Under the pieces are notes generated by a model. The model was not told the origin of the DNA. It searched no databases and worked only from the letters and a program-made list of their open reading frames with translations. DNA of 64,000 nt from Macrostomum lignano (Eukaryota): assembly GCA_002269645.1 (NCBI GenBank), contig NIVC01000984.1, forward strand, positions 124,001-188,000, written 5' to 3'. The position numbers and the translations under genes were made by a program. Every line of letters begins with the position of its first letter. The first letter of the stretch is position 1. This document shows positions 15,470-52,391 of this stretch, piece by piece.

Positions 15470-15766
15470 GACACCCACAGACGCTCTCTCTCTCAGAAAG
15501 TCTCTCCGTGATATTGCCACCACCCAGTATTTCCAAGAAATTTAACAGCGGTGTACAGGTAGCGAGAGGGATCCAATTGTAAACCGATAATGCGATACGG
15601 GCTCGCGGCACAAGTGCCTCTCTGTCTTGTCTCGCAAACAATTGCTTGTCAGAAGGAGAAAAGTGGCTGATTACCGCTGCACGCACAGATATAATCGCGG
15701 GGCCAGGTGTTCGCGGATGGCTGCCAGTTTGGGATGCGGCGGGAAGAAATGCCGCAAAAATTGAAG

Positions 15767-15822: not shown

Positions 15823-16339
15823 CACGCGCCTGGCATGCTTTGGGTGGGGGTTCCGAGAGACAGGGGGGCCCACTCAAACATCTGCTCCAGTCTGCCACTC
15901 TTCCGGGTGGAAATCGCCTAGCAATTAGAAGAATTTAGTTGGGAAAATATCGCTAAATAGGGATTTGCTATCAGCTTAGGAACAGTCTCTATCAGCTATT
16001 GATCCCCCTAAGCCGGTCGTATTTTTCAATTCAAACGGAATGGCTGAATACAATTTGCAAAACAAGCAGAGCAATGGCACACAGGTGAAACAATTCAAAG
16101 AGAATTCATTTGTTTTACTGCAAATTCACTCTATTAGAAATATAGCTGTACACTTCGAAATTCGCAATAGAAATAACTTTTTGACTCTGTGAATACGACG
16201 AGATCATTGCACTGAGGATAGTCTCGTGTTATGCAGCAAATATTTGGTAATTTAATAGGGAAACAAACTGTTTTAAATACTTTTGTAGGTTTGTTTATAA
16301 ATACGACGCTTTTTTATTGGCAAACTGTTTTGAGGTTGC

Positions 16340-17801
16340 TTATCTGTCTAGAGGTTTCTTATCTGTCTAGAGGTATCTTATCTATCTAGAGGTATCTTAT
16401 CTGTCTAGACGTATCTTATCTGTCTAGAGGTATCTTATCTGTCTAGAGGTATCATCTTATCTGTCTAGAGGTATCTTATCTGTCTAGAGGTATCTTATCT
16501 GTCTAGAGGTATCTTATCTGTCTAGAGGTATATTATCTGTCTAGAGGTATATTATCTGTCTAGAGGTTTTTTATCTGTCTAGAGGTATCTTATCTGTCTA
16601 GAGATATCTTATCTGTCTAGAGGTATCTTATCTGTCTAGAGGTATCTTATCTATCTAGAGGTATCTTATCTGTCTAGAGGTATCTTATCTGTCTAGAGGT
16701 ATCTTATCTGTCTAGAGGTATCTTATCTGTCTAGAGGTATCTTATCTGTCTAGAGGTATCTTATCTGTCTAGAGGTATCTTATCTGTCTAGAGGTTTCTT
16801 ATCTGTCTAGACGTATCTTATCTGTCTAGAGGTATCTTATCTGTCTAGAGGTATCTTATCTGTGTAGAGGTATCTTATCTGTCTAGAGGTATCTTATCTG
16901 TCTAGAGGTATCATCTTATCTGTCTAGAGGTATCTTATCTGTCTAGAGGTATCTTATCTGTCTAGAGGTATCTTATCTGTCTAGAGGTATCTTATCTGTC
17001 TAGAGGTATCTTATCTGTCTAGAGGTATCTTATCTGTCTAGAGGTATCTTATCTGTCTAGAGGTTTCTTATCTGTCTAGACGTATCTTATCTGTCTAGAG
17101 GTATCTTATCTGTCTAGAGGTATCTTATCTGTGTAGAGGTATCTTATCTGTCTAGAGGTATCTTATCTGTCTAGAGGTATCTTATCTGTCTAGAGGTATC
17201 ATCTTATCTGTCTAGAGGTATCTTATCTGTCTAGAGGTATCTTATCTGTCTAGAGGTATCTTATCTGTCTAGAGGTATCTTATCTGTCGAGAGGTATTTT
17301 ATCTGTCAAGAGATATCTTATCTGTCTAGAGGTATATTATCTGTCTAGAGGTATCTTATCTGTCTAGAGGTATCTTATCTGTCAAGAGGTATCTTATCTG
17401 TCTAGAGGTATATTATCTGTCTAGAGGTATCTTATCTGTCTAGAGGTATCTTATCTGTCAAGAGGTATCTTATCTGTCTAGAGGTATCTTATCTGTCTAG
17501 AGGTATCCTATCTGTCTAGAGGTTTCTTATCTGTCTAGAGGTATCTTATCTATCTAGAGGTATCTTATCTGTCTAGACGTATCTATCTGTCTAGAGGTAT
17601 CTTATCTGTCTAGAGGTATCTCATCTGTCTAGAGGTTTCTTATCTGTCTAGAGGTATCTTATCTATCTAGAGGTATCTTATCTGTCTAGAGATATCTTAT
17701 CTGTCTAGAGGTATCTTATCTGTCTAGAGGTATCTTATCTATCTAGAGGTATCTTATCTGTCTAGAGATATCTTATCTGTCTAGAGGCATCTTATATGTC
17801 T
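16340..17801 (-). repeat. 19-bp minisatellite (TTATCTGTCTAGAGGTATC)n, right arm (reverse complement of 14342-15469)
   Basis: About 77 units that share rare variant units with the left arm. Confidence 0.98.
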
Positions 17802-18538: not shown

Positions 18539-21500
18539 ATGCTAGGAAATCATTCAAATCGGTTCGCTGATTCCAGTAGCCATGGCAACGCCACGCTGCT
18601 CAGCATGCCAACCTGGACAGTCGTCGGCGCCGTGAAAGCCACCATCATGCTGGCGCTGTTCCTGACTGCCCTGTTTGGCAATGCCGGGGCCGCTTCCGTG
18701 CTGCTGCTCATCCGCCGACGGCTGAACGGCGGCGGCTGGGACGGCGGCGACAGGGCAGGAGGCGGCTGGACTCTGCTGCTGCACCTTCTGGCCGCCGACA
18801 CACTGGTTGCCATCTTCTGCATGCTCGGCGACGCCATGTGGCAGGCCACGGTGCAGTGGCTGGCCGGCGACGCCATGTGCCGACTGTTCAAATTCTGCCA
18901 GTCGGCGGCCCTCGCCGCGTCCACCTACGTCACCGTAGCGGTGGGCATCGACCGGGCCATGGGCGTCGTTGACGCCGAAACCTCGGATAGTCCGCAGCGC
19001 CGCCGGTGCAGACGGAGACTCCTGACTGCCGCCTGGGGCCTCGCATTACTGGTCAGCTGCCCGCAGGTTCGTGCACCGGGAGACTGGAACTCGGGAGGCC
19101 TGTTCGATAATGATGGAGTGCTGAGGAGACTGGGACTTGGATAGCCTGTTCGATAATGATGGAGTGCTGAGGAGACTGGGACTTGGATAGCCTGTTCGAT
19201 AATGATGGAGTGCTGAGGAGACTGGGACTTGGATAGCCTGTTCGATAATGATGGAGTGCTGAGGAGACTGGGAGTTGGATAGCCTGTTCGATAATGATGG
19301 AGTGCTGAGGAGACTGGGACTTGGATAGCCTGTTCGATAGTGATGGAGTGCTGAGGAGGCTGGATGATTAATTTTATCTTTTCGTCAATAATAAATTTAC
19401 TTGTCAGGGATGAGTACTCGTATCTCAGGAGAAAACAAAAATCCCCATTATGATTCTCCTAAAACTAGCTGCTACAATTTCGCGTCGCCCGCGGGCCCTG
19501 GGAGCTGCCGTTCTACCAGTGCGTCTCACTGCATGTCGACCCGCCAGCCGAGCTCGCTGGCAGCATTGACCGAATCCTGATGGCCGTGATGATCTTCAAC
19601 CTGACCTTCATGTTCCTCCTGCCTGTGACGGTCCTCTCGTTCGCCTACGGCCGCCTCGTGCGCGCCATCGACGAGGGGCGTCGCGTGATCGGTAAATTGA
19701 ATCACCAGCTCAGTCACCAATTCAGCCACCAATTCAGTCACCAATTCAGTCACCTGTTCATTCACCAATTCAGTCACCAATTCAGCCACCAATTCAGTCA
19801 CCAATTCAGTCACCAATTCAGTCACCAATTCAGTAAATAATTCAGTCACAAATTCAAACACCTATTCAGTAAATAATTCAGTCACAAATTCAGCCACCAA
19901 TTCAGTCACCAATTCAGTCACCAATTCAGTCACCAGTTCAGTCACCAATTCAGTCACCAATTCAGTCACCAATTCAGCCACCAATTCAGCCACCAATTCA
20001 GTCACCAATTCAGTCACCAATTCAGTCACCAATTCAGTCACCAGCTCAGTCACCAATTCAGCCACCAATTCAGTCACCAATTCAGTCACCAATTCAGTCA
20101 CCTATTCATTCACCAATTCAGTCACCAATTCAGTCACCAATTCAGTCACCAATTCAGTAAATAATTCAGTCACTAATTCAATCACCAGCTCAGTCACCAA
20201 TTCAGCCACCAATTCAGTCACTAATTCAGCCACCAATTCAGCCACCAATTCAGTCACCAATTCAGTCACCAATTCAGTCACCAGCTCAGTCACCAATTCA
20301 GTCACCAATTCAGTAAATAATTCAGTCACTAATTCAATCACCAGTTCAGTCACCAATTCAGCCACCAATTCAGTCACCAATTCAGCCACCAATTCAGTCA
20401 CCAATTCAGTCACCAATTCAGTCATCAATTCAGCCACCAGTTCAGTCACCAGTTCAGTCACCAATTCAGTCACCAATTCAGCCACCAATTCAGTCACAAA
20501 TTCAATCACCCATTCAGTCACCAATTCAATCACCAGTTCAGTCACCAATTCAGTCACCAATTCAGTCACCAGTTCAGCCACCAATTCAGTCACCAATTCA
20601 GTCACCAATTCAGTAAATAATTCAGTCACTAATTCAATCACCCATTCAGTCACCAATTCAGTCACCAGTTCAGTCACCAATTCAGCCACCAATTCAGTCA
20701 CCAATTCAGTCACCAATTCAGTCACCAATTCAGTCACCAATTCAGTCACCAATTCAGTAAATAATTCAGTCACAAATTCAATCACCTATTGAGTCACCAA
20801 TTCAGTCACCAGTTCAGCCACCAATTCAGCCACCAATTCAGTCACCAATTCAGTCACCAATTCAGCCACCAATTCAGCCACAAATTCAGCCACCAATTCA
20901 GTCACCAATTCATTCACCAATTCAGTCACCAATTCAGTAAATAATTCAGTCACCAATTCAGTCACCAATTCAGTAAATAATTCAGTCACCAATTCAGTCA
21001 CCAATTCAGTCACCAGTTCAGCCACCAATTCAGTCACCAATTCAGTCACCAATTCAGTAAATAATTCAGTCACCAATTCAGTCACCAATTCAGCCACCAA
21101 TTCAGTCACCAATTCAGTCACCCATTCAGCCACCAATTCAGTCACCAATTCAGTCACCAATTCAGTCACCAATTCAGCCACCAATTCAGTTACCAATTCA
21201 GTCACCAATTCAGTCACCAATTCAGTCACCAATTCAGTAAATAATTCAGTCACAAATTCAATCACCTATTGAGTCACCAATTCAGTCACCAGTTCAGCCA
21301 CCAATTCAGCCACCAATTCAGCCACCAATTCAGCCACAAATTCAGCCACCAATTCAGTCACCAATTCAGCCACCAATTCAGCCACAAATTCAGCCACCAA
21401 TCCAGTCACCAATTCATTCACCAATTCAGTCACCAATTCAGTAAATAATTCAGTCACCAATTCAGTCACCAATTCAGTCACCAATTCAGTAAATAATTCA

Positions 21501-23552
21501 GTCACCAATTCAGTCACCAATTCAGTCACCAGTTCAGCCACCAATTCAGTCACCAATTCAGTCACCAATTCAGTAAATAATTCAGTCACTAATTCAATCA
21601 CCCATTCAGTCACCAATTCAATCACCAATTCAATCACCAGTTCAGTCACCAATTCAGTCACCAATTCAGTCACCAATTCAGTCACCAATTCAGTCACCAA
21701 TTCAGTAAATAATTCAGTCACCAATTCAGTCACCAATTCAGTCACAAATTCAGTCACCAATTCAGCCACCAATTCAGCCACCAATTCAGCCACCAATTCA
21801 GTCACCAATTCAGTCACCAATTCAGTCACCAGTTCAGCCACCAATTCAGTCACCAATTCAGTCACCAATTCAGTCACCAATTCAGTCACCTATTCATTCA
21901 CCAATTCAGTCACCAATTCAGTCACAAATTCAGTCACCAATTCAGCCACCAATTCAGCCACCAATTCAGCCACCAATTCAGTCACCAATTCAGTCACCAA
22001 TTCAGTCACCAGTTCAGCCACCAATTCAGTCACCAATTCAGTCACCAATTCAGTCACCAATTCAGTCACCTATTCATTCACCAATTCAGTCACCAATTCA
22101 GTAAATAATTCAGTCACCAATTCAGTCACCAATTCAGTCACCAATTCAGTAAATAATTCAGTCACAAATTCAAACACCTATTCAGTAAATAATTCAGTCA
22201 CAAATTCAGCCACCAATTCAGTCACCAATTCAGTCACCAATTCAGTCACCAGTTCAGTCACCAATTCAGTCACCAGTTCAGTCACCAGTTCAGTCACCAA
22301 TTCAGTCACCAATTCAGTAAATAATTCAGTCACCAATTCAGTCACCAAATCAGTAAATAATTCAGTCACTAATTCAATCACCAGCTCAGTCACCAATTCA
22401 GCCTCCAGTTTAGTCACCCATTCAGTCACCAATTCAGTCACCTGAATGTTTATCAATGTTTCCATCGCGGACGGCAAATCCAACGAAAACTCGTGTTATG
22501 GTTGATTAAATTGAATAAATTGATTAAACTGATCCAATTAAGTTGATTCGTTATCATTTTTTAATCACGCATGCATGAAGCGACAAATTTACTCTGATTA
22601 GACAAATTAAAGCTGAAGGATCTGTATTGCCTTAAAAGGTAGTGCCTTCCTTAAACAGTATTGAAAACATTGGGTAAAAGAGTTATACAGCTGTATCTTG
22701 TTCCAGACCGTCCGCCCCATCACACTTCCCCATCCGCCCACTCCCCCCTCTATCTGCTCCCTGTATTTATCTTCTTCCTATACTCTTCTGCCTCCATTTA
22801 ACGGTGTGCATGCTCGTCTCCAACGCCCCACTTTGTACTTCACCGTCCGCCATCATCATCCCTACAACCGCCCCTTCACTAACACTCTCTCCGCCCCCTC
22901 TCTCCGCTCCCTCTATCCGCCCCTCTCTCCCGCCCCCTCTACCTGGCTCCGCCCCTATCCGCCCCCTTTATCCGCCCCCGCCCCCGCCCCTATCCGCCCA
23001 CTTTATCCGCCCCCTCTCTCCACCCTCTCTATCCGCCCCCGCTCCTATCCGCCCCCTTTATCCGCTCCGGCTCCTATCCGCCCCCTTTATCCGCCCCGCC
23101 CCTATCCGCCCTCTGCTTTATTCGCAGCCGAGCGGCAAGCTTTGGACAGCGATCGCGAAAGCGGCAGCGTCGGCGGACTGATGAGGCGTGCCAGAGTGCG
23201 GAGCCTGCGGATGTTCGCCGCGATCATCTTGACCTTCATTGTCCTGTGGACACCCTACTGGCTGATCTACCTCGCCACCTGCGTGAGCAACCTGGTCACC
23301 GGTGTTCTAGATCAGACTTCGGACCAGAATTATCACTCCAGACTCGAACTGGCTAGCGATTTAATCTTCTGCTTCGGCATGAGCGTTAGCTCTGTGAATC
23401 CCTTTATCTATGCCTTCTGGGGTGGAGGCAGAGGCGGCGGCGGAGGTGGCGGCGGAGGCGGCGTCGGAGGTGGCGGCGGAGGCGGCAGCGGAGGCGACGG
23501 CGGAGGCCGGAATCATCAGCAAATTCTGCAAATTCCAATGCTAATCATCTAA
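18539..23552 (+). CDS. Rhodopsin-family neuropeptide GPCR, corazonin/GnRH-receptor type; join(18539..19066,19469..19691,23128..23552), 391 aa
   Basis: Seven TM segments with GT-AG introns in consistent phases (0,1). Motifs: LHLLAADTLV (TM2), ATVQWLAGDAMCRLFKF (ECL1/TM3), GIDR, PQ|LLQFRVARGPWELPFYQCV (ECL2), RRARVRSLRM..WTPYW (TM6), IFCFGMSVSSVNPFIY (TM7). The ECL2 RGP..FYQCV and TM7 FGMS..VNP.IY motifs resemble arthropod corazonin receptors. Confidence 0.88.
19098..19363. repeat. 46-bp tandem repeat (~6 copies) in GPCR intron 1
   Basis: atagcctgtt recurs at 19141 and 19187 (period 46). Confidence 0.95.
19704..22443. repeat. 12-bp minisatellite (TTCAGTCACCAA)n, ~228 units, GPCR intron 2
   Basis: Directly visible. 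It produces artefactual (TELV)n ORFs on the minus strand. Confidence 0.98.
22890..23112. repeat. C-rich short tandem repeat (CTATCCGCCCC-like) before GPCR exon 3 acceptor
   Basis: Repeated tatccgcccc units end about 15 nt before the AG at 23126-23127. Confidence 0.85.
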
Positions 23553-31574: not shown

Positions 31575-32985
31575 AGGGCTTATCAATGAGGGCTAATCAA
31601 TGAGGGCTAATCAATGAGGGCTAATCAATGAGGGCTAATCAATGAAGGCTAATCAATAAGGGCTAATCAATGAGGGCTAGTCAATAAGGGCTAATTAATG
31701 AGGGCTAACCAATGAGGGCTAGTCAATAAGGGCTAATTAATGAGGGCTAATCAATGAGGGCTAGTCAATAAGGGCTAATCAATGAGGGCTAATCAATGAG
31801 GGCTAGTCAATGAGGGCTAGTTAATAAGGGCTAATCAATGAGGGCTAGTCAATGAGGGCTAGTTAATAAGGGCTAATCAATGAGGGCTAGTTAATAAGGG
31901 CTAATCAATGAGGGCTAGTTAATAAGGGCTAGTCAATAAGGGCTAATTAATGAGGGCTAATCAATAAGGGCTAATTAATGAGGGCTAATCAATGAGGGCT
32001 AGTCAATAAGGGGTAATCAATGAGGGCTAATCAATGAGGGCTAGTCAATGAGGGCTAGTTAATAAGGGCTAATCAATGAGGGCTAGTCAATGAGGGCTAG
32101 TCAATGAGGGCTAGTCAATGAGGGCTAATCGATGAGGGCTAATCAATGAGGGCTAGTCAATGAGGGCTAGTTAATAAGGGCTAATCAATGAGGGCTAGTC
32201 AATGAGGGCTAGTTAATAAGGGCTAATCAATGAGGGCTAGTTAATAAGGGCTAGTCAATAAGGGCTAATTAATGAGGGCTAATCAATGAGGGCTAGTCAA
32301 TAAGGGCTAATCAATGAGGACTAATCAATGAGGGCTAGTCAATGAGGGCTAGTTAATAAGGGCTAATCAATGAGGGCTAGTCAATGAGGGCTAATCAATG
32401 AGGGCTAGTCAATAAGGGCTAATCAATGAGGGCTAGTCAATGAGGGCTAGTTAATAAGGGCTAATCAATGAGGGCTAGTCAATGAGGGCTAATCAATGAG
32501 GGCTAGTCAATGAGGGCTAATCAATGAGGGCTAGTCAATAAGGGCTAATTAATGAGGGCTAGTCAATGAGGGCTAATCAGTGAGGGCTAGTCAATGAGGG
32601 CTAATCAATGAGGGCTAATCAATGAGGGCTAATCAGTGAGGGCTAGTCAATGAGGGCTAATCAGTGAGGGCTAGTCAATAAGGGCTAGTCAATGAGGGCT
32701 AATCAATGAGGGCTAATCAATGAGGGCTAATCAATGAGGGTTAATCAATGAGGGCTAATCCAAAAGGGTTAATCGATGAGGGCTAGTCAATAAGGGCTAA
32801 TCAATGAGGGCTAGTCAATGAGGGCTAATCAGTGAGGGCTAGTCAATGAGGGCTAATCAATGAGGGCTAATCAATGAGGGCTAATCAATGAGGGTTAATC
32901 AATGAGGGCTAATCCAAAAGGGTTAATCGATGAGGGCTAATCAATGAGGGCTAATCCAAAAGGGTTAATCGATGAGGGCTAATCA
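31575..32985. repeat. 14-bp minisatellite (GGCTAATCAATGAG)n
   Basis: About 100 units. Confidence 0.97.
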
Positions 32986-34152
32986 ATGACGACCATCCCT
33001 AAAGGCGCGCACAGTGTATACACTGACTTTCGATGAAAAAAGTCAAGGCTGCTGTGCACCCTGTGTGACTGTGGCACCTGTGTCAGCCGGTTCAGCGCAA
33101 TGGGCATGACTGCTTGCCTCCCCTCCCTGCTGGATGTGGGTCGAACGTCGCCTTGATTCCCCAAAGCCTCTAACCCAAAAACCTGCATGCAGTTCAAATA
33201 CCACCGCCATCAAAGCACACACAAAGCTCGATAACTTTGATAACGCAAACACATCATTTTTGTACCGTTGAACGAGACTTAACTATTCGCAAGTGACAGT
33301 AACGCGTGGACTGCGACCACTTAAAAAAGTTCTAGTGCTGCTTTTCAGGTTTGAAAGACAATATTATTTTACAATCAGCCTTCAGCCAATTGAGCTGTTT
33401 ACATAGAGAATTCATTTCATGGCTTCACAGCCATCAGCCAGGGACTTCTCATCCATTCGCTCTAACGAAAGCGAGCAGGGAAATTATTTTTGCAGTGGCG
33501 CATCAGCAATTCAGGTAAGTTATTACCTAGAAGTCCGGCCCTCTCTCTGAAGCGGCGTTCCTGTCTTTCCAATCAATTCGCGGTGACAGTGGAAACAGCC
33601 GGGGCGGGCAGTCTCCGAGGAAAGATAAATTTACTCTGGGCAAGACAAGTGAGGTGGGAGTGGACAGAAACTGGAGTAGCTAAAAGGAGTGCGGCACAAC
33701 TGTCTTCTTTTGCTTTTGAGCCATGTAGTTCAGAATCCAATCACTAATTCATCATTTCTTCTTCTCTTCCGTTCTTTTCTGCTTTCTCCAGTCAGCTGGA
33801 TGGGGAGGGCTGTGTGTGTCAAACACGATTTCAGCTGGATTGTGAGAGCTGTGTGTGTGTCAGACACGAGTTCAGCTGGACTGTGAAAGCTGTTTGTGTC
33901 AAAACTGAGTTTAGATGTCTGTTATTTGTGTCAAATTTGAGACTGAGAGTGATATGAATGCCTTGAAGGCCTCTCATACTGTACAGTATAATCATAAATC
34001 AATCGAGAATGTGACATTAAGGGGCAGAGAAATGAGAAACTCGTTTGATAAAATGTTGACCGAACTGTTATTTTCGACAAGTTGACAGAATATTATTCTG
34101 CATTTTTGTAAGCTCACTGAACCATCTGCTCCGTCATAATCACCTCGGCCAT

Positions 34153-34905
34153 ACACAGGCCCTTTGCCACAACACTACGAACTCCCGGACAGTCGCTGAC
34201 TGCACCCGGCAGCTCAACCTCCTGGCCAGTTGCAATACTGTCAGGCTGAAGTGGATCCCAGGGCACGGGAACGAGTTAGCAGACGACCTCGCCATGAGGG
34301 CGGCTCTGGCTCCTTATGGGCCCTGAGCCACTGGTCCCTATCCCTTCTACGGTCATCAATCGTCAGATCGATGACTGGGCTGATTCCCTCCACAGGGACA
34401 GATGGGCGGGCACCCAAAACTGCCGGCAATCTCGTGCCGCGGTTCCGTGCCCCTCTCGCAGGCTCAGAAACGTCCTTCTGAACCAAAATCGGATAGATAT
34501 TCGAGCCCTCGTCATGACCTTTGCCGGCCATGGCTACCTCGCCAAGCACTGCTTCCTCCGAAGCGATCTGGAGAGTGAACTTTGTCCTTTTTGCGAGTAC
34601 AACAATGAAGATGCTCAGCACTTTGTCACTGCCCTTTCTTTACCAGCGACCGGCTGCGCTACCTCGGGCCAAACCCGTCCATTGACGAGGTCTGCCAGCC
34701 CGCGGACAGCATCCCACACGGCTCATCCAGCGACAAGCCGAGCCACTTTCTTCCCTAGGAAAGTTTACACTGCAGGACGGACTGGCGGACCACCCTGCGA
34801 CCCGGCGTCCACGCCTCTGCCTGTCTGCGGGCCTTCAGGGGTTTAGCGGAATGGGCGACCCTCGCCTCCCTAGTCTACGGATCACCCTCAGCTGAGTCAA
34901 GTAAG
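34153..34905 (+). mobile_element. 5'-truncated RNase H-containing LINE (I/R1-group-like) with 13-bp TSD
   Basis: RNase H end TVRLKWIPGHGNELADDLA, then GPEP..GHGYLAKH..CPFCEYNNEDAQHFV(fs)CP zinc knuckle and a short AAGT tail. The flanks are tcacctcggccat (34140-34152) and tcacctcagccat (34906-34918). Confidence 0.88.
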
Positions 34906-35878: not shown

Positions 35879-36567
35879 AACTAGTTTTGAACGAAATATC
35901 GCCAAATAGCTAGAATTTCAAAACTTTCTACTCACCATCATTCTTAGTAACAGTAGTAATATCAGAGTTTGCGAAAAATAAGATCAGAGTTATGGTTAAA
36001 AATTAAAAACGTTTGTGCATATGAATGTCAGTAAATATTTGTTTTAATGGTTACAATTACAATTAATGGGTCGGGACTGACTCTGGTACATTTCCCGTAG
36101 AAATCCAATTATATGAGCGTAATTACTCGTAGTGTATCTTGGCAAAAAACTTTATATTCTTCATTTAAAATATAGAAAAAAGTCAACTTGAGTGCAGATT
36201 TGCATAATTAATTAAGCTGGTGATGACTGTGTTTATTTCGAGTCCATATCTGGAGGAGGGGAGGTTTTTTATTAACTACATTTATAGCAAATGGGAGTTA
36301 GAAAGGATTATAATAGCACACATTGTACAAGTCAAGCAAATTCTATCAAATACTAGCGATAACCACTTTCGGACTTGAACATGTCAGTCTCCCCTTAGTC
36401 ATTCACAATATAATAAAATAGAAAAAAACAACAGCAGGTACAACAGTGAGTGAATTAAGGAAAGGTATTTCAATTAGAGCTTGAACTGGAAGTGAATGGT
36501 AGGCATATAGCAATATTGATGCGGCTTGCTCTCATTCAATTAGTCGGCAAGGCCTAATTTAAACAAA

Positions 36568-37147
36568 TCAAGCCGGCTGCGATTCAGCGCCAGCGCCTCG
36601 CGCGCCTCCGGCTCGCTTCCGTTCGCGCCTGCGCGCTTTCCTCTGCCTGCGCCGGAGTTTGCGCCTCTCCCGGCGCTGACGCTTGCACTCGGGCGTGCTG
36701 CACTTGGAACGTCGGCCGGCCTTTCTGCCGCCCTTCCGGCGGCCTTTGCGGCCTTTGCGGCCTTTGCGGCCTTTGCGGCCTTTGCGGCCTTTACGACCTT
36801 TACGGCCTTTCCGGCCCTTCCGGCCCTTCTTCTTCCTTCGGCCGCGGCGCTTCCGGGCGCCACTGGGGCTGGCTTCAGATCCGGCGCTGGCGCTAAAAAT
36901 AAAAATAAATGAATGACAATTCAAGGTGATCGAAAATCAATAGAATGGCGCCTATTATTAGTACGGTCCAGCATTACAGATAGACTTACACTTCAGGCCG
37001 CTGATTTCCGGTCTGAAGTGCGCCGCCTGCTTCAGGAGCCAGAAGCTGCAGCGGCTGTCGGCCAGAGGCTGGAGCCGCCTCACAGACGAGGCTGTAAGCG
37101 GCAACGCTGGCCGCAACGACCAGGGCCAGTGTACAAAGGCCCTTCAT
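36568..37147 (-). CDS. Secreted polycationic GRK-repeat protein, 160 aa; join(complement 37147..36990, 36892..36568)
   Basis: Exon 1 encodes the signal peptide MKGLCTLALVVAASVAAYSLVCEA and ends GT|gtaagt (phase 2). The 97-nt intron has a T-rich acceptor (tttatttttatttttag). Exon 2 resumes in phase and encodes RKRRGRRKKK(GRK)9..CSTPEC..RRERRKLRRRQRKARRRERKR. All nucleotide variation among GRK units is at third codon positions. Confidence 0.88.
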
Positions 37148-37299
37148 GTGCGCGCGTCTTTGACTTTTTAAAAAAGTAAATGTGTATTATAATCTTTTGC
37201 TTCGAATAGCTGTCCGGTTCGACTCTTGAACGGTAGCAATTTAGTTTTCTGAATGCTGTTGTGGGCTTGACTTCTGTTGTGGCCTTAAATATGAAACTT

Positions 37300-41900: not shown

Positions 41901-44900
41901 AATTGATTATTAATATTATCAAAATGGTTTTCAAAAAGCTATATTAATGCCTGGGGCCAATTTCATAAAAAAACTACAAGTGACAAGTGACAAGTCGACA
42001 AATGACAAATGACAAGTGTCAAGCGTCAACAATTTTGGTTTCATAAACATCACACGTTACTAGTGTTAAAAATAACTCACTTGTGTTTCAATGGTTGAAC
42101 CACCTTATAAAATCGATTGAGCCTTTTGATCACAGACCAAAATCTTTGGAGTTATGTTTTGCTTTGCTTTGATAGATTTGCTTAAATGATGGCCTCTGTG
42201 TTCTTCTCAGTTTGTAATACTTTATTTACTGCAATGAAAGACAAAGAGGAAGCAAAGATTTTTTTGCTAGATCGTATCCAGACCAATAGGGAAGTTTTGT
42301 TTGGAAAGTTCATTAGGGCTGTAAAGCTGTTAGGGGTTTGTTACTGAGCGTACCATGTTCAATCACTGGACCAATAGTTTGTAAAAGAGTCTCCACCTGA
42401 TCCATTCTGGGATAGAAGCATTCGGAAAATTTAAGGCCCTGAGGCTGAAAGTTGATTCATTCTTTAAAAACTCTTTGCACAGGTCCTAGAGCCACTAGGA
42501 ACTCTAATTCTTCATCTTCGCTATCGGACATGAAAAGATAAAACATAAGAAAACAATTTGATAAAAGCTACAAGTGTTACAGTGACTTGTCAAAAACACA
42601 TGACAAGAGGAAGTATTTTTACACAGAAGCATCCAGCTTAGTGCATGTCTATAGACGAAAATCCCAAACAAACACTTGTAATTTGTCAAATTTTGCTTGT
42701 CACTTGTCACTTGTAATTTGTCAAGTTGTAGTTGTTTTTTATGAAATGCATTATTTTTTGGACTTGTCACTTGTAATTTGTCCAACAAGTGCTTTATGAA
42801 ATAGCCTCCTGGTAAAGTTTTTATTTAAAAACCAAGATTGTAATATGTTTATTTCATACAAAACTTGTCTAGCTTCTTTAACAGTTACATATTTGTGCAA
42901 TAGATGTGTATATTAATATTGGTAGACTAAATGTTTTATAAATGGCTTAATTTGAATTTCTTGGCCTATTTATAGAAACATTTACCAACTTAATATCCTT
43001 TATATGCTTTATATGCTTTTGCTACCACATGGAGTTAGTCATAGTTTATAGTTGGCATTGGACACTACATACATGCACAGTTTGGTATCAAAGGCAGAAG
43101 TCACATGACAAGATCCAGGCTAATTTTTGTGCACAAGCCCCAAATTAATGTGCAATTAGAGAGCATTCTATAAACGCACCCCTCCAAATCAACCCCTATA
43201 TAGGCCTCCCTAAAGGAGATTCATTATCGCCGGTACCGAATAGCACAGCCAGTAGAGAGTGCGCACACCTGCTCCGATCCGGTGTTTAGCAGCTTCGCAA
43301 AATGCCAACGCTGCGGCATTTTGTCAGCCTGGAAGCGCTACCTACCTGACACTGGCGATCCCAGCAAGCCGTACGATTATGGCAATTATGAGAAGGAATT
43401 ATGGGTATTCTGGCATGGCGGCCACGACCCGCCTCAGCTGCGGGACAGTCTGGCGCACGATCTCACACCGTGGTCAGACAGCTCGGATGGCGGCGGCATC
43501 AGCTACGAGGTTCGGACTATGCTATTCAAAGCAGTGCATAATTGCATCGAGCGCTGTTTAACTGGCAAAGGCTACGTTCGACTAGGCCAATGGTTTGTCC
43601 GGCCGCTGGTGCCCGGCCTCTGTTTGGATCCGGCTGTGACGCAACAGTTCAGTCTGGCTTTGAACTATTTCCTGCACGGCGAATCTGTCTGCGCCGCTGT
43701 TGATGCTAAACTATATCCCCCTGTAAGCTAATTTAATACTCCTTTGCAGCAGCTTTACTAACTCACAATACCTCCCGCCATTGAGATTTGTTAAATAGAA
43801 ATTACCGTTGAGATTCATCTGATCATTAATCTTCTCTTGTGAAACTAGATTACAATCTTACCAGTTGAGTTTTGATGCTTCAAAATAATCCTCACCGCTC
43901 GGTTTATAATATCCCCTTGTGAGATTTGTTAGCCCATCTCACAATATCCCCTTGTGAGATTTGTTAGCCCATCTCACAATATCCCCTTGTGAGATTTGTT
44001 AGCTCAGCTCACAATATCCCCTTGTGAGATTTGTTAGCTCAGCTCACAATATCCCCTTGTGAGATTTGTTAGCTCTGCTCACAATATCCCCTTGTGAGAT
44101 TTGTTAGCCCATCTCACAATATCCCCTTGTGAGATTTGTTAGCTCAGCTCACAATATCCCCTTGTGAGATTTGTTAGCTCAGCTCACAATATCCCCTTGT
44201 GAGATTTGTTAGCTCAGCTCACAATATCCCCTTGTGAGATTTGTTAGCTCAGCTCACAATATTCCCTTGTGAGATTCTATTTAATGCCTGTGTGCCCAAT
44301 TGAATCAATCGCTTGTCTTAATTCAACCACAATACCCAACCATGAAAATGCAGGTACACAGCCTGACCAAGCAGCAGTGCCAGGCTCGGACTCCCGTCAT
44401 TCTGTCTCCACACGGCATTGCTGGCGAACTCACTGGCCGAGAATGGGATTCACAAAATCAGATTGAATCCCTAGTCTGGCGCGAGTTCTTTCCTCACGTT
44501 CGCACCGATCGCGGCTTTGTTGAGGTGGCCGTCGGGCAGCATCGCCTCTGGTACCCGGTGGATCTTCTGTTCGCCACCCAGGCGCCGCTGCCGCCGGAGC
44601 CGCTATCCCAGATTGAGCTCAATCTGGCTGCCGAATCATCAGCAGATGCCTGTCTGCAACACCTGCTCGGCTGTCAGGGCTCGGATGCTAACGGCGTGCA
44701 TCAGCAGCAGCAGCAGCAGCGCTGCACGTGTCGCAGGCGCACAAAGCCGCGCCCGGCACTGACCAGCGCCTATCACAATCGTTTCTTTCAAGCCACCGAG
44801 CGGACTGTAGACCGAGAACCGGCTATGCCGACGCTTAGCCCGCAGGAGCCACTCAGCGTTGAAGAAAGCGAAGCCGCAGCCGCCGCCGCCTCTGGGGCAG

Positions 44901-47900
44901 CCTCCATCCCAACGGCTGATGGCGTCGGGCAACAGCCGTCGTTAAAAGGCCTGCCAAAAAGTGAGCCAATCTCGCCGCCGGCCGCCGCGTCAGTTGAAGC
45001 AGCAAAGTCTCAGGGCGACGGCGTCGGACTGATGGACGACGAGTCGCAACAGCAGCAGACCCAGGCGGCCGCCGCTTCTGCGCTTGCCGAATCTTCGTCG
45101 AGTCGGCCAGCTTCGGTCAAGACGCCGCAGTCTCAGCCAACTGGCAGCGAGTCTCAGCCCGCTTCGGCCGCCGCCGCTGCAGCCGCCCCGACGCCGCCCC
45201 TGCCGCCTCCGCCTCCCCCACCGCCGACATCCTCTGCCCAACAACAGCAGCAACAGCAGCCGCCACCGCTTCCCGCCTCCTCGATGCCTAACGGTCAAGC
45301 TAGCAGTGTTGCAGCCGACTCACTGTTGGAGCCTGGCCTCGGCTGGCTTTCCGTAGTGCAACAATCGCTGCGCAAGCGGCCGCTACCGCAGCTGGAGCCT
45401 TGGGAAGCCGATCTGAACGATTCTGGGCACGACGTTGTTAGCGAACTGCCCGAATGGACATCGCTGGCTGCATACGCTAAGCACGCTCGGCTCCTGCTAC
45501 CAGCTCGCGGCATTTTGAACGGTCCCGCTAGCAGTGCTAATGCGACTGCCGCTGGCTCCGTAGGCGGTAGCGGCGCTGCCAGCGGCGTCGCTTTACCTAT
45601 TGACGATTCGGCTTCGCCTTCGGGCATTGGTTCCCTAGTCGGCCTGAGAAGTTCGCCTAGTAAAGCCGGTTTGTCAGCCGACTCTAAGTCAAGTAAGCTT
45701 TTCATCATTGTATAATTTTTATTCATTATCTATTATTTGATTCATTCTCTTTATACTCGTATCCGACCTCTAGTTCGATTTGCTATTTTCAATATATCGA
45801 AGCAATCATCCCAAAAATTTCAGCCGCCGTGTCTCTGAAGAGCGAAGACATACTTAAAGTAGAGAATCTGCAGATGCAAAGCATTTTTGAAGTTGAATCG
45901 CCAGAACCCGTGAGTTGGTGGCTCTTTTTCTTATTTATTACCTTCTGTAGCCCAATCATTTTTGTTGCTCTTTAAATCTTTTAAAAGACTTGGCAACCAA
46001 GAAGCAACAACCCTATGGAAAATCGCCTCCACACCACAACACCCTATGTAATATCGCCTCCATGGCACAACACCCTATGGAAAATCGCCTCCATGGCACT
46101 ACACCTTATGTAATATCGCCTCCATGCCACAACACCCTATGTAATATCGCCTCCATGGCACAACACCCTATGGAAAATCGCCTCTATGGCACAACACCCT
46201 ATGGAAAATCGCCTCCACACCACAACACCCTATGGAAAATTGCCTCCATGCCACAACACCCTATGTAATATCGCCTCCATGGCACAACACCCTATGAAAA
46301 ATTGCCTCCATGCCACAACACCCTATGGAAAATTGCCTCCATGCCACAACACCCTATGGAAAATCGCCTCCATGGCACAACACCCTATGGAAAATTGCCT
46401 CCATGGCACTACACCCTATGGAAAATCGCCTCCATGGCACTACACCCTATGGAAAATTGCCTCCATGGCACTACACCCTATGGAAAATCGCCTCCATGGC
46501 ACTACACCCTATGGAAAATCGCCTCCATGGCACTACACCCTATGGAAAATCGCCTCCATGGCACTACACCCTATGGAAAATCGCCTCCATGGCACTACAC
46601 CCTATGGAAAATCGCCTCCATGGCACTACACCTTATGTAATATCGCCTCCATGCCACAACACCCTATGGAAAATCGCCTCCACACTCGCACCCGCAACGC
46701 TTTGCAGTTGGACAACGCAAACGCCACTTGCGAAGGCCCAGGCTTACACGGCAATCCGTCCAGCAGCGGATGCGTCATCGGTGGCACCTCCATGGCCTCC
46801 TGCGGCGGCTCCGGCACGCTGCCCGCCTCAGACTTGTGTCGGATCTACCCGACCCCGCCCTCTCTAGAGAATCACATTCACCCGTCACCTGCGCCGGAAA
46901 CCGACCAGGCCAATATGCTCAGTCCTGCTGCTGCGGCCGCTGGACACCATCACCACCACCATCACGCCTCGGCCGACTGCGGATCTGGCCCCGATCTAGC
47001 TAACGACGACGATTGGAGCTTCTTGACCTCGCAGCGTCATCAGGGCGGCAGTCTGGGCCAATTATTTACTGCCCAGAATCCTCCGATGCCTCATCTATCG
47101 ATTGTGTACGTACCGGAGCTGCCACAGACGCATCGGCCGCATCGGGCTGCTGCGGCAGCTGCTGGCCACGCAGGCGGTGGGCACTACGGCATTGGCCAGC
47201 AGATTGCTGCAACACCTTCGTCGGCCTCTGTCACCGCTGTCGGACACATGCCGGCCGGAACGCCGGTCACGCCCGGTTCATTCGCCGCGGTGGCAACGCC
47301 GGTCAGTGTCCGGACGCCCGGACCGGCGGGCACGCCGTGCGGTTCGATTGTTGGCGAACAGCTGGACCAGTCTCAGCTGTCCACAGGGCATCAGTCTATT
47401 CAGGCGTCTCAGGCGCAACCGGTTGAAGCGCTGAGATTAAATTTGTTGCTATCTGACTCACTGCTTTGTCTGTGCCGAGATCAGGTACTTTCTTAGATTT
47501 TTGGGTTGTTATCATGCTTGGTTAAAATCTTAACTGGCTCTACTCTACGGCAATTGCATTCCAGTATCCTCGATTAGCCACCACCCTTCCAAACCCTCAG
47601 CTGTTGAGCCACACTCCCATATCCTCAGTTGCTGGGCCAGCCTGTCAGATCCTCAGTTGCTCGGCCAGCCTCCGATATATTCAGTTGCTGGGCCAGCCTC
47701 CCAGATGCTCAGTTGCTCGGCCAGCCTCCGATATATTCAGTTGCTGGGCCAGCCTTCCAGATCCTCAGTTGCTGGGCGACCCTCCCAGATGCTCAGTTGC
47801 AGGGCCAGTCTCCCAGATCCTCAGTTGCTGGGCCAGCCTCCCAGATACTCAGTTTCTGGGCCAGTCTCCCAGATCCTCAGACTGAGCCATCACCCTAGAA

Positions 47901-50900
47901 AAGATCCAGAAAAGACCTTGTCTAATCTCTCAGCGCCTTATACCTTCAATTAGCCGACTCGCCACTGCAAGCCAATATTCACATCATAGCACATAGCAAT
48001 TCTTCCCCGCGCAATCCCCAGAACTTCGAGGCCTGCAACATCTGCGTGTGCCACGGCGACCTGACAGGCTCCGAGGCGGGCCTCTACATGCCCGGCCTGT
48101 TGGACCGGCGGCCTTCGCCTTGCCAGTGCGGCTTCTCAGCCAGCGCCAACCGGGCCCTTGGCCTCGGCTCCAACATCTTCTATGAGGATCTGTGCGACCT
48201 ACTGGGCGATAGACGACGCCTGGATTATCGGCCCTGGCCGTCAACTTATTCGCCGGCTGTGATTGACAGTCTGCTGAACTTTGTCTCTCTCACCATTCCG
48301 CTCAGGCAGTTCCGATCTCCTCCAGCTCAGCAGCAACAATCGCAGTCAGACGCAACCAACTCCGCCGTTGCAGTTGTCGCTGGCGCCGCTGCAGCCGCGG
48401 GCGCCGCAACTGCTGATCCCGCTGCTAGCAGCAGCCTGCATCCCGGTCATCTCGCTCAGTTTGAAGATTGCAACGAAGCGGCTAAATTAGTGCTACAGGT
48501 AGCCAGCTTGATCCGACAGAATCACACTATGTGTACAGCGGGGGGTAATTTTCTCATCATCAGGAAACATTCAGCGCCTGTCCTGGGGGGTTGTGGGATT
48601 CGCAACTTCAAGGTCGGGGGTTCGATTCTCGACCCACTGGGAACAATTTGTGTCCTTGAGCAAGACAGCTGCAAAATGGGTGCCAGCATTAGCTGGGGTA
48701 ATTGAGGGTGTACATGGCGACCCCCCATTCCTTGGACTGAACAGCCGTACGCAGCCTTCAGATGCGCCGCGCAATAGCTGCGGCTGAGCTGTCGGTTGCA
48801 CATCTGCCCATTAGGGCAGGTGTAATCAATTATTATTATTATTATGAGCTATATAATAGATTGCCTACTGACAAGTAGCAAATAAAGATTGTGAAGTGAA
48901 TTTCTTATAGTGTGTGCAAAAAGACTTCAACCATGTCTACATTTGGGGTGCTAGCTCAGCGTTTAATAACCAGCTGGTCTCATCGTGAGATTACAAGCTC
49001 ACAGGGTTGCCTCTCATGAGTACTACAATGAATCGAGCATTCATCTTGAGTACTTAACCTGTATTAAGAGTACTTTGTTCAGGCCCATCGCGGAACAATT
49101 TTGTTGCTAGGCCGACTGGAGGGAAAGGATGGGAAAGAGTCCCAGATCCATCAGTCCTCCCTTCGAATTTCAGTTAAACAAGCATGAACGAAACAATCTA
49201 ATAAGCCAGATAATCTTTAATAATCCACCTTTAAACAATCTAATCCGCAGGCGTGTACGCAGGGACTGCATCAGCCGCAGCAGCAGCAGCAGCCATTTTC
49301 ACTGGCTGAGCAGCCAACCCTGCTGCACCGATGGAGCTTAACTGGCCAGCTGCCCACGGCTGGCTCAGATTTGGTCCGATTATTAAAAAGCCTCAGACCC
49401 TGGTTCCAAGACTCACTATGGGGCAAAGCGTTGCAAGGCAATTATTGGGTAACTGGCCCAATGACCTGGCAAGAGTTTCATCAGTTTGCTAGGCGAGGCT
49501 CCGAGGAGAGCTGCGAGCCGCAGCCTTTGCCATTAATATCTGTCTATACTGACCGAGACGAGGGCATGCTGATTGCGCCGACCGCTGTGCGCGACTGGGA
49601 GCGTCTCGGCTTGGAGCCCTATAGCCGGCCAAAGAAACTGCAGTTTGTAGTGCTGGCGCCAGTCCAGGCTAGCCGGGTATTGAAGAAAGCGGTCCGGCGT
49701 ACAATGAGCGAACTGACTGTAGCATTCGCCGATTGCAAACTAGGCGAGCACAGTCCCGTTGCTTTATCGACTGATGGCGATTTCTTTTTAGATACCGGCC
49801 GATTAGAGTCCACAGAATTGCCGCCTAATTGCGTGGTTTATATGCTGGTTCGTGGCCAAACTGAGGCTTGCCAACTGCGCGACACAGTGGCCAAACTGAC
49901 TGGTGGAGCTGTCCCCGTGCCGCTGTCCACCAGACTGTTGCTGGCTCCGGCCAAGGGCGATTTGCGTGCTCTGGCTCTGCGTGTTTACACTCAGGTGAGC
50001 CTGCTAGGTCATCTAGCATCTGTTGGCATTATCTAGCCTCCACGGAAAATATATGATCTCTACTGACATGATCTAGTCTCTATTGGCATGATCTAGTCTC
50101 TGTTGGCATGATCTAGTCCCTACTGACATGATCTAAGCCTTACTGTCATGATCTAGTCCCTACTGTCATGATCTAGTCCCTACTGTCATGATCTAGTCCC
50201 TACTGTCATGATCTAGTTCCTACTGATACTGACATGATCTAGTATCTAATAGCATGATCTAGTCCCTACTGACATGATCTAAGCCTTAATGTCATGATCT
50301 AGTCTCTAATGGCATGATCTAGTCCCTACTGTCATGATCGAGTCTCTAATGGCATGATCTAGTCCCTACTGTCATGATCGAGTCTCTAATGGCATGATCT
50401 AGTCCCTACTGACATGATCTAAGCCTTAATGTCATGATCTTGTCTCTAATGGCATGATCTAGTCCCTACTGTCATGATCTAAGCCTTAATGTCATGATCT
50501 AGTCTCTAATGGCATGATCTAGTCCCTACTGTCATGATCGAGTCTCTAATGGCATGATCTAGTCCCTACTGTCATGATCGAGTCTCTAATGGCATGATCT
50601 AGTCCCTACTGACATGATCTAAGCCTTAATGTCATGATCTTGTCTCTAATGGCATGATCTAGTCCCTACTGTCATGATATAGTCTCTAATGGCATGATCT
50701 AGTCCCTACTGTCATGATATAGTCTCTAATGGCATGATCTAGTCCCTACTGTCATGATATAGTCTCTAGTGGCATGATCTAGTCCCTACTGACATGATCT
50801 AAGCCTTAATGTCATGATCTAGTCTCTAATGGCATGATCTAAGCTTTAATGTCATGATCTAGTCTCTAATGACATGATCTACTTCCTACTGCTACTGACA

Positions 50901-52391
50901 TGATCTAGTATCTAATGACATGATCTAGTCTATATTGATATGATCTAGTCCCTACTGTCATGATCTATTCTCTATTGGCATGATCTAGTTCCTACTGACA
51001 TGATCTATTCTCTATTGGCATGATCTAGTCCCTACTGTCATGATCTATTCTCTATTGGCATGATCTAGTTCCTACTGACATGATCTATTCTCTATTGGCA
51101 TGATCTAGTCCCTACTGACATCATCTAGTCCCAGTCCCTACTGAGATACGCTACTTAATCCTATCCCAACAAAACTACCCCTCCCCAGGTGCCGAAGCGA
51201 GTGCCTTATCCCACGGACGGTCGCTCGCTGTGCGGCTTCGGGCCGCTGAAAGATCGCGAGAGCTGCCAGCGCGAGCTGGGCATGACCGGCCCCGTGTCTC
51301 TGTTCGCTCCGCCCTACGTGCTGCATGCAAGCTCCGATGAACCGGTGCTATTGTGCGCCTACTGCCTATCTGAGGACAGGCGCTGGCTACTTGCCACCCT
51401 AACAGACGAGCGGGGCGAATTAAATTATCGCCGATTAATTAATCTACGCGTGCCCGACTGTCATCGGCGTAGGAAAGCATCAACTAAACAGCTGGGACCC
51501 GAACGCCTGCTAGAGTGGATCTGCGACCTGCCAGAGACCAGAGCTCAACGCTGGCGGCTTGTGCTCAGCCGGCTGGGCCGTCTAGGCCACGGCGAACTGC
51601 TAGTGTGGGCCGACCTGCTCAAACGGGCCAGCCTGCAGCAGCGCGGCGCCCGCTCGGCCGCTCTGTGCGCAGTCGACGCCGATCCCCATCTGCGCGTCCT
51701 GCCCGACCAGCTCAGTCGGGAAGGTCCGCAACGCGGTCCGCCCAGCGTCGGCGCCGATCGGCGTGTCAGCAGCGCCATCACGCACATCCTTGTGCTGCCA
51801 ACTTCGGCCAGTTTTAGTCAGGCTAATCCGGCCGACTTTCTGGGCGGCAGTCTGGGCGAGCCGGACCTCATGAACGAATTATTAGGCGATCCCGGCGTTC
51901 TAGGCGGCGACACTGGCAACGATTTGTTCAACGATTTGGATTTGAATTTCGATATCCAACTGCCAGATATTGAGGAGCCGGTTGTTGGGCCGCAGGGCGG
52001 CGACGGGTCCGGCCAGTTGATGCAGCAGCCGCTGGCTCTTGGCTACTACCTGTCCAGCGCTCCGCCTGGCCCTGTGCCAGCCTGGTTCCGGGTGGCTCCA
52101 CCTGAGCAGGCCGCAGTCTGCCTGCGCGCCAGCCTGCACCTCAACCAGCTGGCTTCTTGCGATCGAGCGCCGCTGTCGGCCGCTTGCGATCGCTCGCCAA
52201 CGCATCCGTTGAACACCTACAAGACTACTGAGGTGCTGCGCTACGTGCTGGAGACCTGCCACAGTCTCAGCTGGCTTAGCGTTGATCCGGCCACTGGCGA
52301 TCGGGTCTCCTGTCTGCCTAGGCACATCAACCAGCTATTCCTGCTGTACCATTCTGTGCACGCCGTTAGCGCTAGCTGCCAGACGTCCTGA
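38918..52391 (+). CDS. MED13: Mediator kinase-module subunit 13; join(38918..38965,43204..43722,44354..45692,45824..45909,46708..47484,48022..48498,49251..49994,51189..52391), ~1730 aa
   Basis: Colinear MED13 motifs: TLEYCYTNIFAI|ASL, ELWVFW, SYEVRTMLFKAVHNCIERCL, FLHGESVC, VILSPHGIAGELTG, LLSDSLL..NFEACNICVC, GPMTWQEFH, WERLGLEPY, LCGFGP, CAYCLSEDRRWLLATLTDERGEL, WRLVLSRLGRLGHGEL, QQPLALGYYLS, LRYVLE..LSWL..SCLPRH. All seven introns are GT-AG with matching phases, and the summed length of 5193 nt is divisible by 3. Confidence 0.95.
39788..40376. mobile_element. 589-bp MITE with 13-bp TIR CCATAGTCAGGAT and 8-bp TSD GTAGGAAC (MED13 intron 1)
   Basis: gtaggaac|ccatagtcaggat ... atcctgactatgg|gtaggaac (TSD at 39780-39787 and 40377-40384). 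Confidence 0.85.
41954..42808. mobile_element. PIF/Harbinger-like non-autonomous element (MED13 intron 1)
   Basis: Imperfect 16-bp TIR (gggccaatttcataaa / tttatgaaatagcctc, 13/16), inverted subterminal TGACAAG repeats, and CTG on both flanks (CWG-type TSD). Confidence 0.62.
43910..44276. repeat. 35-bp tandem repeat (~10 copies), MED13 intron 2
   Basis: Period 35. The unit carries the mini-hairpin CTCACAA-tatcccc-TTGTGAG. Confidence 0.96.
46005..46685. repeat. 31-bp minisatellite, MED13 intron 4
   Basis: tacaccctat recurs at 46441 and 46472. Confidence 0.96.
47597..47885. repeat. 28-bp tandem repeat, MED13 intron 5
   Basis: tcagttgc recurs at 47653, 47681 and 47709. Confidence 0.93.
48583..48845 (+). 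mobile_element. tRNA-derived SINE, copy 2 (MED13 intron 6)
   Basis: B-box GGTTCGATTC, then gtgtccttgagcaagac..aaatgggtgccagc body and an (ATT)n tail. Confidence 0.85.
50010..51135. repeat. 20-bp minisatellite (CATGATCTAGTCCCTACTGT)n, MED13 intron 7
   Basis: Period 20 at 50161-50200. Confidence 0.96.

Follow-up and report, generated by a model that had tools for sequence, protein, structure and literature searches.

The locus at positions 36568 to 37147 on the minus strand of a 64,000-nucleotide stretch of the Macrostomum lignano genome (assembly GCA_002269645.1, contig NIVC01000984.1, positions 124,001 to 188,000; hereafter the window, in whose coordinates all positions are given) raises the question of whether a strongly basic repeat in repeat-rich DNA is open by chance or forms part of a two-exon gene for a small secreted polycation, as a first-pass annotation of the same DNA had proposed. 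The analysis described here, which draws on the sequence itself, indicates that the locus is probably a real protein-coding gene of two exons that has remained unannotated. The explanation that we rank best, and which we hold tentatively, is that this gene encodes a secreted, convertase-processed polycation that would bind polyanions, most likely with a mucus-associated defence role.

The spliced coding sequence (CDS) on the minus strand comprises 483 nt, a multiple of three including the TGA, and its 160-residue product is exactly the protein that had been put forward from an ATG at 37147, a 97-nt intron and an in-phase splice. Exon 1 contributes 158 coding nt (36990 to 37147, minus strand), specifying residues 1 to 52 and two bases of codon 53; the phase 2 intron (36893 to 36989; GTAAGT...ATTTTTAG) has a GC content of 32%, and exon 2 supplies the remaining 325 coding nt (36568 to 36892), with the TGA at 36568 to 36570. 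Read without splicing, the 53-codon open reading frame (ORF) from ATG 37147 is MKGLCTLALVVAASVAAYSLVCEAAPASGRQPLQLLAPEAGGALQTGNQRPEV, and its terminating TAA sits within the donor GT/GTAAGT (the slash marking the splice boundary). On the acceptor side, a T-rich tract leads to TTTTTAG/C, from which an ATG-free frame runs for 107 codons up to the TGA. Exon 2 is visible in the ORF listing solely as a 118-residue ORF with a TTG start, which matches the earlier remark that the listing contained just a basic fragment without a proper start. The splice motifs described for M. lignano are a GT[G/A]AG donor, with which the GTAAGT of the candidate intron agrees, and an enriched CAG acceptor (PMC8629364).

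The flanks of the gene are compatible with this model. A TATA-like box, TATAAT, lies at 37186 to 37191 (minus strand), 44 nt 5′ of the ATG, and the TAA inside it forms an in-frame stop at −42 that rules out an upstream start in the exon 1 ORF; with exon 2 devoid of ATG, the codon at 37147 is the sole available start. Beyond the stop codon, an AT-rich 3′ flank carries two AATAAA hexamers on the minus strand, at 36268–36273 (295 nt from the stop) and 36232–36237 (331 nt), which are candidate polyadenylation signals. The GC content amounts to 67–68% in the CDS (about 64% in exon 1) against 32% in the intron and 34% in the 3′ flank, and the confident exons elsewhere in the window are at 60%.

How far such a model exceeds chance was assessed against the other ORFs of the window. 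We defined a splice composite by four features: a GTRAGT donor inside the ORF, an intron length of 40 to 300 nt, an acceptor AG with 10 or more pyrimidines in the 12 positions before it, and an in-phase continuation of 100 codons or more. On the two strands taken together, 631 ATG ORFs reach a length of 20 codons, and the combination occurred in one of them only, at the present locus. A crude signal-peptide heuristic was passed by nine of 423 ATG ORFs in the window (about 2%), the candidate being one of these nine and five others being transmembrane segments of a G-protein-coupled receptor (GPCR). The repeat itself provides a further line of evidence. Its nine 9-nt units vary at unit positions 3, 6 and 9 only (GGC/GGT, CGG/CGT/CGC and AAG/AAA), which are the third codon positions of the GRK frame, and all of this variation is synonymous, in keeping with the earlier claim; the same unit differences are non-synonymous in the other frames (AGR/AGK/AVK/VVK/AAK). 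No fewer than four mutational events must be assumed among the units, and the probability of all of them falling on third positions by chance is about (1/3)^4 = 0.012. All six Arg codons are used, AGG and AGA among them, and the Lys/Arg (K/R) content of the core reaches 65% in the GRK frame, the two remaining sense frames giving 24% and 19%. Together, the synonymous-only units, the six Arg codons and the frame-specific K/R content indicate that basicity belongs to the protein and not to a single nucleotide repeat, and we count the substitution pattern among the units as suggestive of protein-level selection on the GRK frame.

These observations have to be set against a non-functional origin of the locus, namely a GC-rich 9-bp minisatellite with flanks open by chance and a coincidental ATG and GT..AG pair, or else a transcribed young de novo ORF that yields no stable protein. 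We regard this account as unlikely, although it carries appreciable weight. Tandem repeats saturate the window with more than 25 arrays, making a 9-bp array unremarkable per se, and the five identical units indicate a recent array expansion. Four frames of exon 2 are open, the three additional ones including a sense AAK-type repeat and an antisense LRP repeat; since this is expected for low-complexity DNA of 68% GC, ORF length was not counted as evidence. Codon usage gives weak evidence, the score for frame 0 of exon 1 being 0.146 bits per codon versus 0.16–0.23 for the exons of the Med13 gene in the window, and one antisense frame of exon 1 scores equally. The base at −3 of the ATG is a C, and the acceptor TAG, placed behind a tract with 10 pyrimidines in 12, is a canonical YAG while the motif enriched in the species is CAG. 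Moreover, homologues were not found and the UniRef proteome of M. lignano does not contain the gene. All these points weigh against a functional gene. On the other side stand the splice composite, which not only is met with in a single ORF of 631 but coincides there with a signal-peptide-like start, the GC contrast, which resembles that between exons and introns, the synonymous-only variation of the repeat with Arg spread over six codons, and the TATA and AATAAA elements at sensible distances. A real gene thus remains the reading that we prefer.

A single ATG (37147) gives access to both sense frames of the repeat, GRK and AAK, by way of an alternative donor. This donor, GTGAGG at 37083 (minus strand, after base 64), would in combination with the same acceptor lead to a 138-residue Ala/Lys-rich ...(AAK)n... 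product; the junction is in phase, the donor is of the GT[G/A]AG type and the +1 frame of exon 2 is open to its stop. That this is the form made at the locus seems extremely improbable to us, considering that the differences among the units alter the amino acids of the AAK frame, that GTGAGG is a weaker donor than GTAAGT and that the signal peptide would be interrupted at its c-region.

In the preferred GRK-encoding form, the predicted protein has the layout of a pre-pro-polycation, with a signal-peptide-like start, a pro-region, a basic processing site and a basic mature part, as had been suggested. The putative signal peptide MKGLCTLALVVAASVAAYSLVCEA (residues 1–24; 37076 to 37147, minus strand) begins with an n-region (MK), continues into a hydrophobic core devoid of charge and has small residues at −3 and −1; it was assigned heuristically, not by SignalP. 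It is followed by a neutral pro-region of 41 residues, rich in Pro, Ala, Gly and Ser, that contains two K/R and three D/E (net −1) and is closed by RKRR (residues 66–69; 36844 to 36855). This site is of the furin/proprotein-convertase type, for which R-X-K/R-R is the consensus. The polycationic core (residues 70–146; 36613 to 36843) reads GRRKKK-(GRK)9-GRRKGGRKAGRRSK-CSTPEC-KRQRRERRKLRRRQRKARRRERKR. Within it, (GRK)9 is uninterrupted (residues 76–102; 36745 to 36825) and corresponds to the 9-bp tandem array GGCCGCAAA, in which the five 3′ units are identical and the four 5′ units differ at synonymous third positions only; CSTPEC (residues 117–122; 36685 to 36702) holds the only Cys pair of the mature part, and KRQRRERRKLRRRQRKARRRERKR (residues 123–146; 36613 to 36684) is an Arg-rich block with a predicted long α-helix. 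A neutral C-terminal tail, AGGARGAGAESQPA (36571 to 36612), follows a KR site. All of these elements lie on the minus strand. The (GRK)9 tract, the RKRR site, the Cys pair and the earlier count of 53 K/R in the 81 residues from RKRR to RERKR were all reproduced. Past RKRR, the mature part would have 91 residues, about 10.6 kDa and 50 K/R versus 4 D/E, with a net charge of about +46. Further R-X-[KR]-R sites within the C-terminal block, RQRR and RERR, offer possible extra convertase cuts, a point against the favoured reading.

An AlphaFold2 model built from the single sequence with no alignment was of low confidence overall, with a mean predicted local distance difference test (pLDDT) score of 64. 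It places a helix at residues 3–21, within the leader, and a single long helix at residues 120–152, whose block-mean pLDDT of 86–97 over residues ~121–150 falls on the Arg-rich block, while the GRK tract is of low confidence. We liken this block to arginine-rich RNA-binding, nucleolar-targeting and cell-penetrating motifs. This likeness, the high-confidence helix and the protamine-like composition would all suit an intracellular product, that is, a protamine-like, nucleolar or RNA-binding Arg-rich protein that stems from a different start or isoform and in which the hydrophobic N-terminus is not used as a signal peptide. We judge this very unlikely, because the stop at −42 and the ATG-free exon 2 leave only the start with the hydrophobic leader, and because protamine and histone families were not matched in Pfam.

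The search for relatives was extensive, and its outcome counts against the gene. The full-length protein, compared with 5.8 billion proteins, produced GRK-driven compositional matches only and no homologue; in an exhaustive phmmer search of 1.84 billion representatives the best match had an E of about 1e-9, the inspected matches being mostly collagen-like G-x-K repeats, none of which aligned convincingly to the non-repetitive parts of the candidate. With the 72 N-terminal residues, which are non-repetitive and span the exon junction, nothing was found at E ≤ 10 among the same 5.8 billion proteins; this search was aimed at spliced orthologues in congeneric transcriptomes, and its six word-sharing candidates all lay above E 10. 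A tblastn search of the window with the protein found no paralogue. In Pfam, the sole match was Collagen (PF01391), below threshold at 19 bits versus the cut-off of 27.2, and the best PDB matches were chains of collagen or of its mimetics, (PKG)10 (2klw) among them. Protamine, sperm nuclear basic protein (SNBP) and histone H1 families gave no Pfam match at E ≤ 0.1 and were not among the PDB sequences matched. Literature searches for the strings GRKGRKGRKGRK returned nothing, transposon structures or flanking repeats were looked for around the gene and not found, an Rfam scan of the window gave no match and the M. lignano spliced leader sequence was not found in it. The expectation that no close match to a characterised family would appear in protein collections, Pfam or the PDB was thus borne out, and by sequence comparison the candidate is an orphan to which no family is assigned. 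Secreted orphans of low complexity are no rarity among ORFs. The missing homologue is weak evidence against expression, since M. lignano proteins derived from transcripts are evidently missing from the collections, even in the case of Med13.

That the gene is unannotated, and in this sense hidden, may not be a biological property. In the Mlig_3_7 annotation deposited in GenBank, transcripts overlapping repeats were filtered out and tandem repeats were masked with Tandem Repeats Finder (TRF) (Wudarski et al., PMC5730564). A TRF array is called at 36739 to 36825, within the candidate CDS, and so the gene may have been removed by the repeat filter. Its hidden status is therefore perhaps an annotation artefact, and the gene may exist in the unfiltered transcriptome. 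More broadly, filters on repeat overlap constitute a systematic blind spot, as they conceal repeat-built coding genes in genomes rich in tandem repeats.

If the gene is expressed as modelled, residues 1–24 would serve as a cleavable signal peptide and the chain would enter the endoplasmic reticulum co-translationally. A furin-type proprotein convertase of the Golgi would then cleave after RKRR (residue 69), freeing the 41-residue pro-piece, and the C-terminal block may be trimmed at RQRR and RERR; (GRK)n is expected to be largely furin-resistant, because Lys and not Arg occupies P1 of every basic pair. The mature product would join a flexible (GRK)9 tract to a helix that is rigid and Arg-rich, with CSTPEC as a mini-loop or a place for cross-links, and would be kept in gland granules before its secretion. 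Outside the cell it would act by multivalent electrostatics alone, binding and condensing polyanions, for example nucleic acids, the envelopes of microbes and the sulfated or acidic glycans found in mucus. The XBBXBB spacing of its basic residues is an ideal pattern for the binding of glycosaminoglycans and other polyanions.

As the single most likely role we favour that of a host-defence effector associated with mucus and acting by ‘polycation poisoning’, while roles in adhesion or granules and in seminal fluid appear comparably plausible. Natural secreted cationic killer peptides are made with a signal peptide and a processed pro-piece, and charge excess has been proposed as enough for their activity (PMC10028949); it is this similarity in precursor logic, together with the argued sufficiency of charge excess, that tips the choice. 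The layout of a cationic host-defence precursor is present (a heuristically assigned signal peptide, a pro-piece, RKRR and a cationic mature part), in the sense of a functional class and not of homology. Two properties of the candidate tell against a defence role: its pro-piece is not acidic (net −1), unlike that of typical antimicrobial peptide precursors, and its mature part is non-amphipathic and nearly free of hydrophobic residues.

A structural role would make the same secreted polycation a cohesive or coacervate component, or a packaging partner that neutralises the charge of polyanionic cargo, in glands of the adhesive, cement, shell or rhabdite type, and we assign it a low probability. 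Adhesion in M. lignano is charge-based, with the K/R-rich adhesion protein Mlig-ap1 providing cohesion; attachment is blocked by heparin, and release is blocked by added cationic peptide, Lys or Arg (PMC6410801). The basic spacing of the candidate would suit glycosaminoglycan binding here as well, and its Cys pair would make cross-linking possible. The resemblance to the Mlig-ap1 repeat peptide SRKPRRKNRKSRKP, on the other hand, is compositional only. The polycation might otherwise be a seminal-fluid protein of the prostate gland, passed on at mating, for which we see a slightly smaller chance still. Prostate and reproductive transcripts of Macrostomum are typically small, signal-peptide-bearing, lineage-restricted and fast-evolving (PMC5977470, PMC7336406), and rapid evolution would suit the orphan status of the candidate; yet the text of the seminal-fluid screen is free of the terms lysine, arginine, basic, repeat, low complexity and isoelectric.

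Should the gene be expressed, its product would be among the most densely charged secreted proteins in a small, synthesisable form (91 residues, about +46). It would offer a handle on the safe production and export of extreme polycations by cells, on the part played by pure charge without amphipathicity in flatworm mucus defence, and on small cationic components in adhesion or release. M. lignano is tractable in this regard, being open to transgenesis, RNA interference and in situ hybridisation, and its temporary adhesion is known to use polycation–polyanion chemistry.

Beyond the candidate, the window contains several other coding features. A Med13 gene occupies 43282 to 52391 (plus strand) with matches to Med13_N, MID_MedPIWI and Med13_C (the last at E = 1e-52). 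With its C-terminal exon as query, the best named match was the Med13 of M. lignano in UniRef (P0008), which places the window in this species; 478 of that model's 607 residues occur in exact runs of at least 12 residues, in various frames, within 43–52.5 kb of the window, and this distribution implies that the UniRef entry derives from the same locus through a frameshifted model. The public M. lignano Med13 model thus appears to be erroneous, with frameshifts at several places relative to the window, judging from these matches. In a Logan contig of run SRR31628403, Med13 is 82% identical and the contig has no megablast match to the window; it presumably stems from a congener. A rhodopsin-type GPCR gene is also present.

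On the minus strand at 6397 to 6876, an ATG ORF of 159 residues opens with a leader resembling a signal peptide; (K)KR-ASFVRLG-K(K)R recurs about ten times in it, and an acidic spacer is present as well. Its appearance is that of a neuropeptide prohormone that would yield ASFVRL-amide, probably representing in M. lignano the family of npp-1/GFVRIamide (flatworms) and FVRIamide (lophotrochozoans). This ORF had no Pfam match and no exact match on record, and neither SFVRLG nor FVRLamide was found in the literature searched. A further ATG ORF of 396 residues (58907 to 60097, plus strand) starts with a hydrophobic N-terminus and continues into a 29-nt tandem array (58968 to 59725), about three units of which make up each 29-residue repeat rich in Ser, Pro, Thr, Gln and His; a transmembrane-like hydrophobic segment and a Cys-rich stretch follow. 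It may represent a membrane protein of mucin-like type, or else be an artefact of the repeat. The ORFs at 34316 to 34846 (plus strand) and 1242 to 1814 (minus strand) are likely transposon remnants. One of this pair bears a CPFC...H motif, as found at the C-terminus of reverse transcriptases of elements that lack long terminal repeats, and has no Pfam match; the other shows weak transposase-type matches to HTH_29/HTH_23.

Much of the window is filled by kilobase minisatellite arrays with periods of 12–46 nt (for example 10182–11514, 12060–13385, 19702–22442, 31575–32989 and 55729–58763). Some arrays lie inside introns, both of the GPCR gene (19702–22442) and of Med13 (43908–44276, 46005–46682 and 50057–51130), and many are open in several frames and give rise to long spurious ORFs, with TELV or PHSH repeats as examples. 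Arrays of the 19-nt satellite GATACCTCTAGACAGATAA at 14342–15471 and 16339–17801 are inverted relative to one another and about 870 nt apart, forming a large palindromic arrangement.

It remains to compare the candidate with known systems. The closest in the same species is Mlig-ap1, which has 5,407 residues, KR regions of more than 3,600 residues in total and an isoelectric point (pI) above 14 (Wunderer et al. 2019, PMC6410801), so that the first-pass annotation had described its long Lys/Arg-rich regions correctly. Both proteins have an extreme Lys/Arg content and pI, are secreted (by prediction for the candidate) and lend themselves to charge interactions with polyanions. Mlig-ap1 differs, however, in its C-type lectin, vWD, C8 and TIL domains, set against a candidate of 160 residues with no domain; in its one quoted KR-region peptide, SRKPRRKNRKSRKP, which contrasts with GRK and to which homology was not detected; and in its proven expression in adhesive glands, the candidate being known from sequence. 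An assignment as an adhesion protein of the Mlig-ap1 type was accordingly rejected, given that the large multidomain build is lacking and K/R richness alone is shared.

Three further kinds of protein were considered and set aside. Protamines and SNBPs are likewise small, Arg/Lys-dominated and of low complexity; they are nuclear, whereas the candidate has a signal-peptide-like leader and a convertase site, and the missing family match and the secretory-like leader at the only start speak against them. In formal terms, (GRK)9-GRR amounts to ten Gly-X-Y triplets, as in (PKG)10, yet the collagen triple-helix repeat was rejected on account of the sub-threshold Pfam score, the mere ten triplets and the Pro-free tract. 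From what is known of charged collagen peptides, a GRK tract is too short and too like-charged for homotrimers. A neuropeptide prohormone carries repeated bioactive peptides with dibasic sites on either side, often X-Gly-(K/R)(K/R) to permit amidation. This kind was also set aside, as the GRK units leave no peptide between basic pairs, in contrast to RASFVRLGK(K)(K) in the ORF at 6397 to 6876.

Cationic host-defence and venom precursors such as LL-37 and crotamine (PMC10028949) share with the candidate a signal peptide, a pro-piece, a basic site and a cationic mature peptide. The candidate differs from them in being far more charged (about +46 over 91 residues), built of repeats and poor in hydrophobic residues, in having a pro-piece that is not anionic, and in its unrelated sequence. 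The arminins of Hydra are further cationic host-defence precursors.

The same layout is seen in P0001, P0002, P0057 and P0045 (Tara Oceans metatranscriptomes), P0035 (an ENA contig) and P0042 (A0A914D9Y7 of Acrobeloides nanus). These look-alikes, all uncharacterised and of 100–220 residues, have a signal peptide, a short pro-piece, RRRR or KKKK and (G-K/R-K)n, and differ in that their pro-pieces are acidic. An exact look-up of P0001 gave nothing on record, and a composition-corrected BLASTP of the candidate against P0035 produced no alignment. Homology was rejected, the alignment being carried by signal-peptide hydrophobicity and G/K/R composition alone, and the look-alikes are best described as analogues of the candidate rather than demonstrable homologues. 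P0045 and P0057 have in common a C-terminal motif, C-x-T...[QK]-x-WKD[IV]..NFE.Q, which is missing from the candidate, and by this motif they constitute a genuine family, as yet without a name, of polybasic secreted proteins from marine eukaryotes with no Pfam domain.

It is conceivable, though we give it only a small chance, that the gene is one instance of an undescribed, convergent class of secreted polycations, small in size and built on Gly-(K/R)-(K/R)n, that also takes in the Tara Oceans and Acrobeloides nanus proteins. Members of such a class would be extracellular charge effectors, with the secretory route protecting the producing cell. The Tat/Rev-like Arg-rich helix might then allow cell entry, microbes or prey cells being condensed and killed, or the protein might be an endogenous antagonist of the presumed anionic releasing factor that tunes the charge-based attach-and-release cycle. 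Independently of whether such a class exists, the look-alikes with the same layout and Mlig-ap1 in the same species provide precedent for the secreted, convertase-processed polycation that we favour. What is new in the candidate would be the orphan itself, whereas the kinds of protein beside which it stands, the precursors of secreted cationic peptides and the K/R-rich secreted proteins of flatworms, are known.

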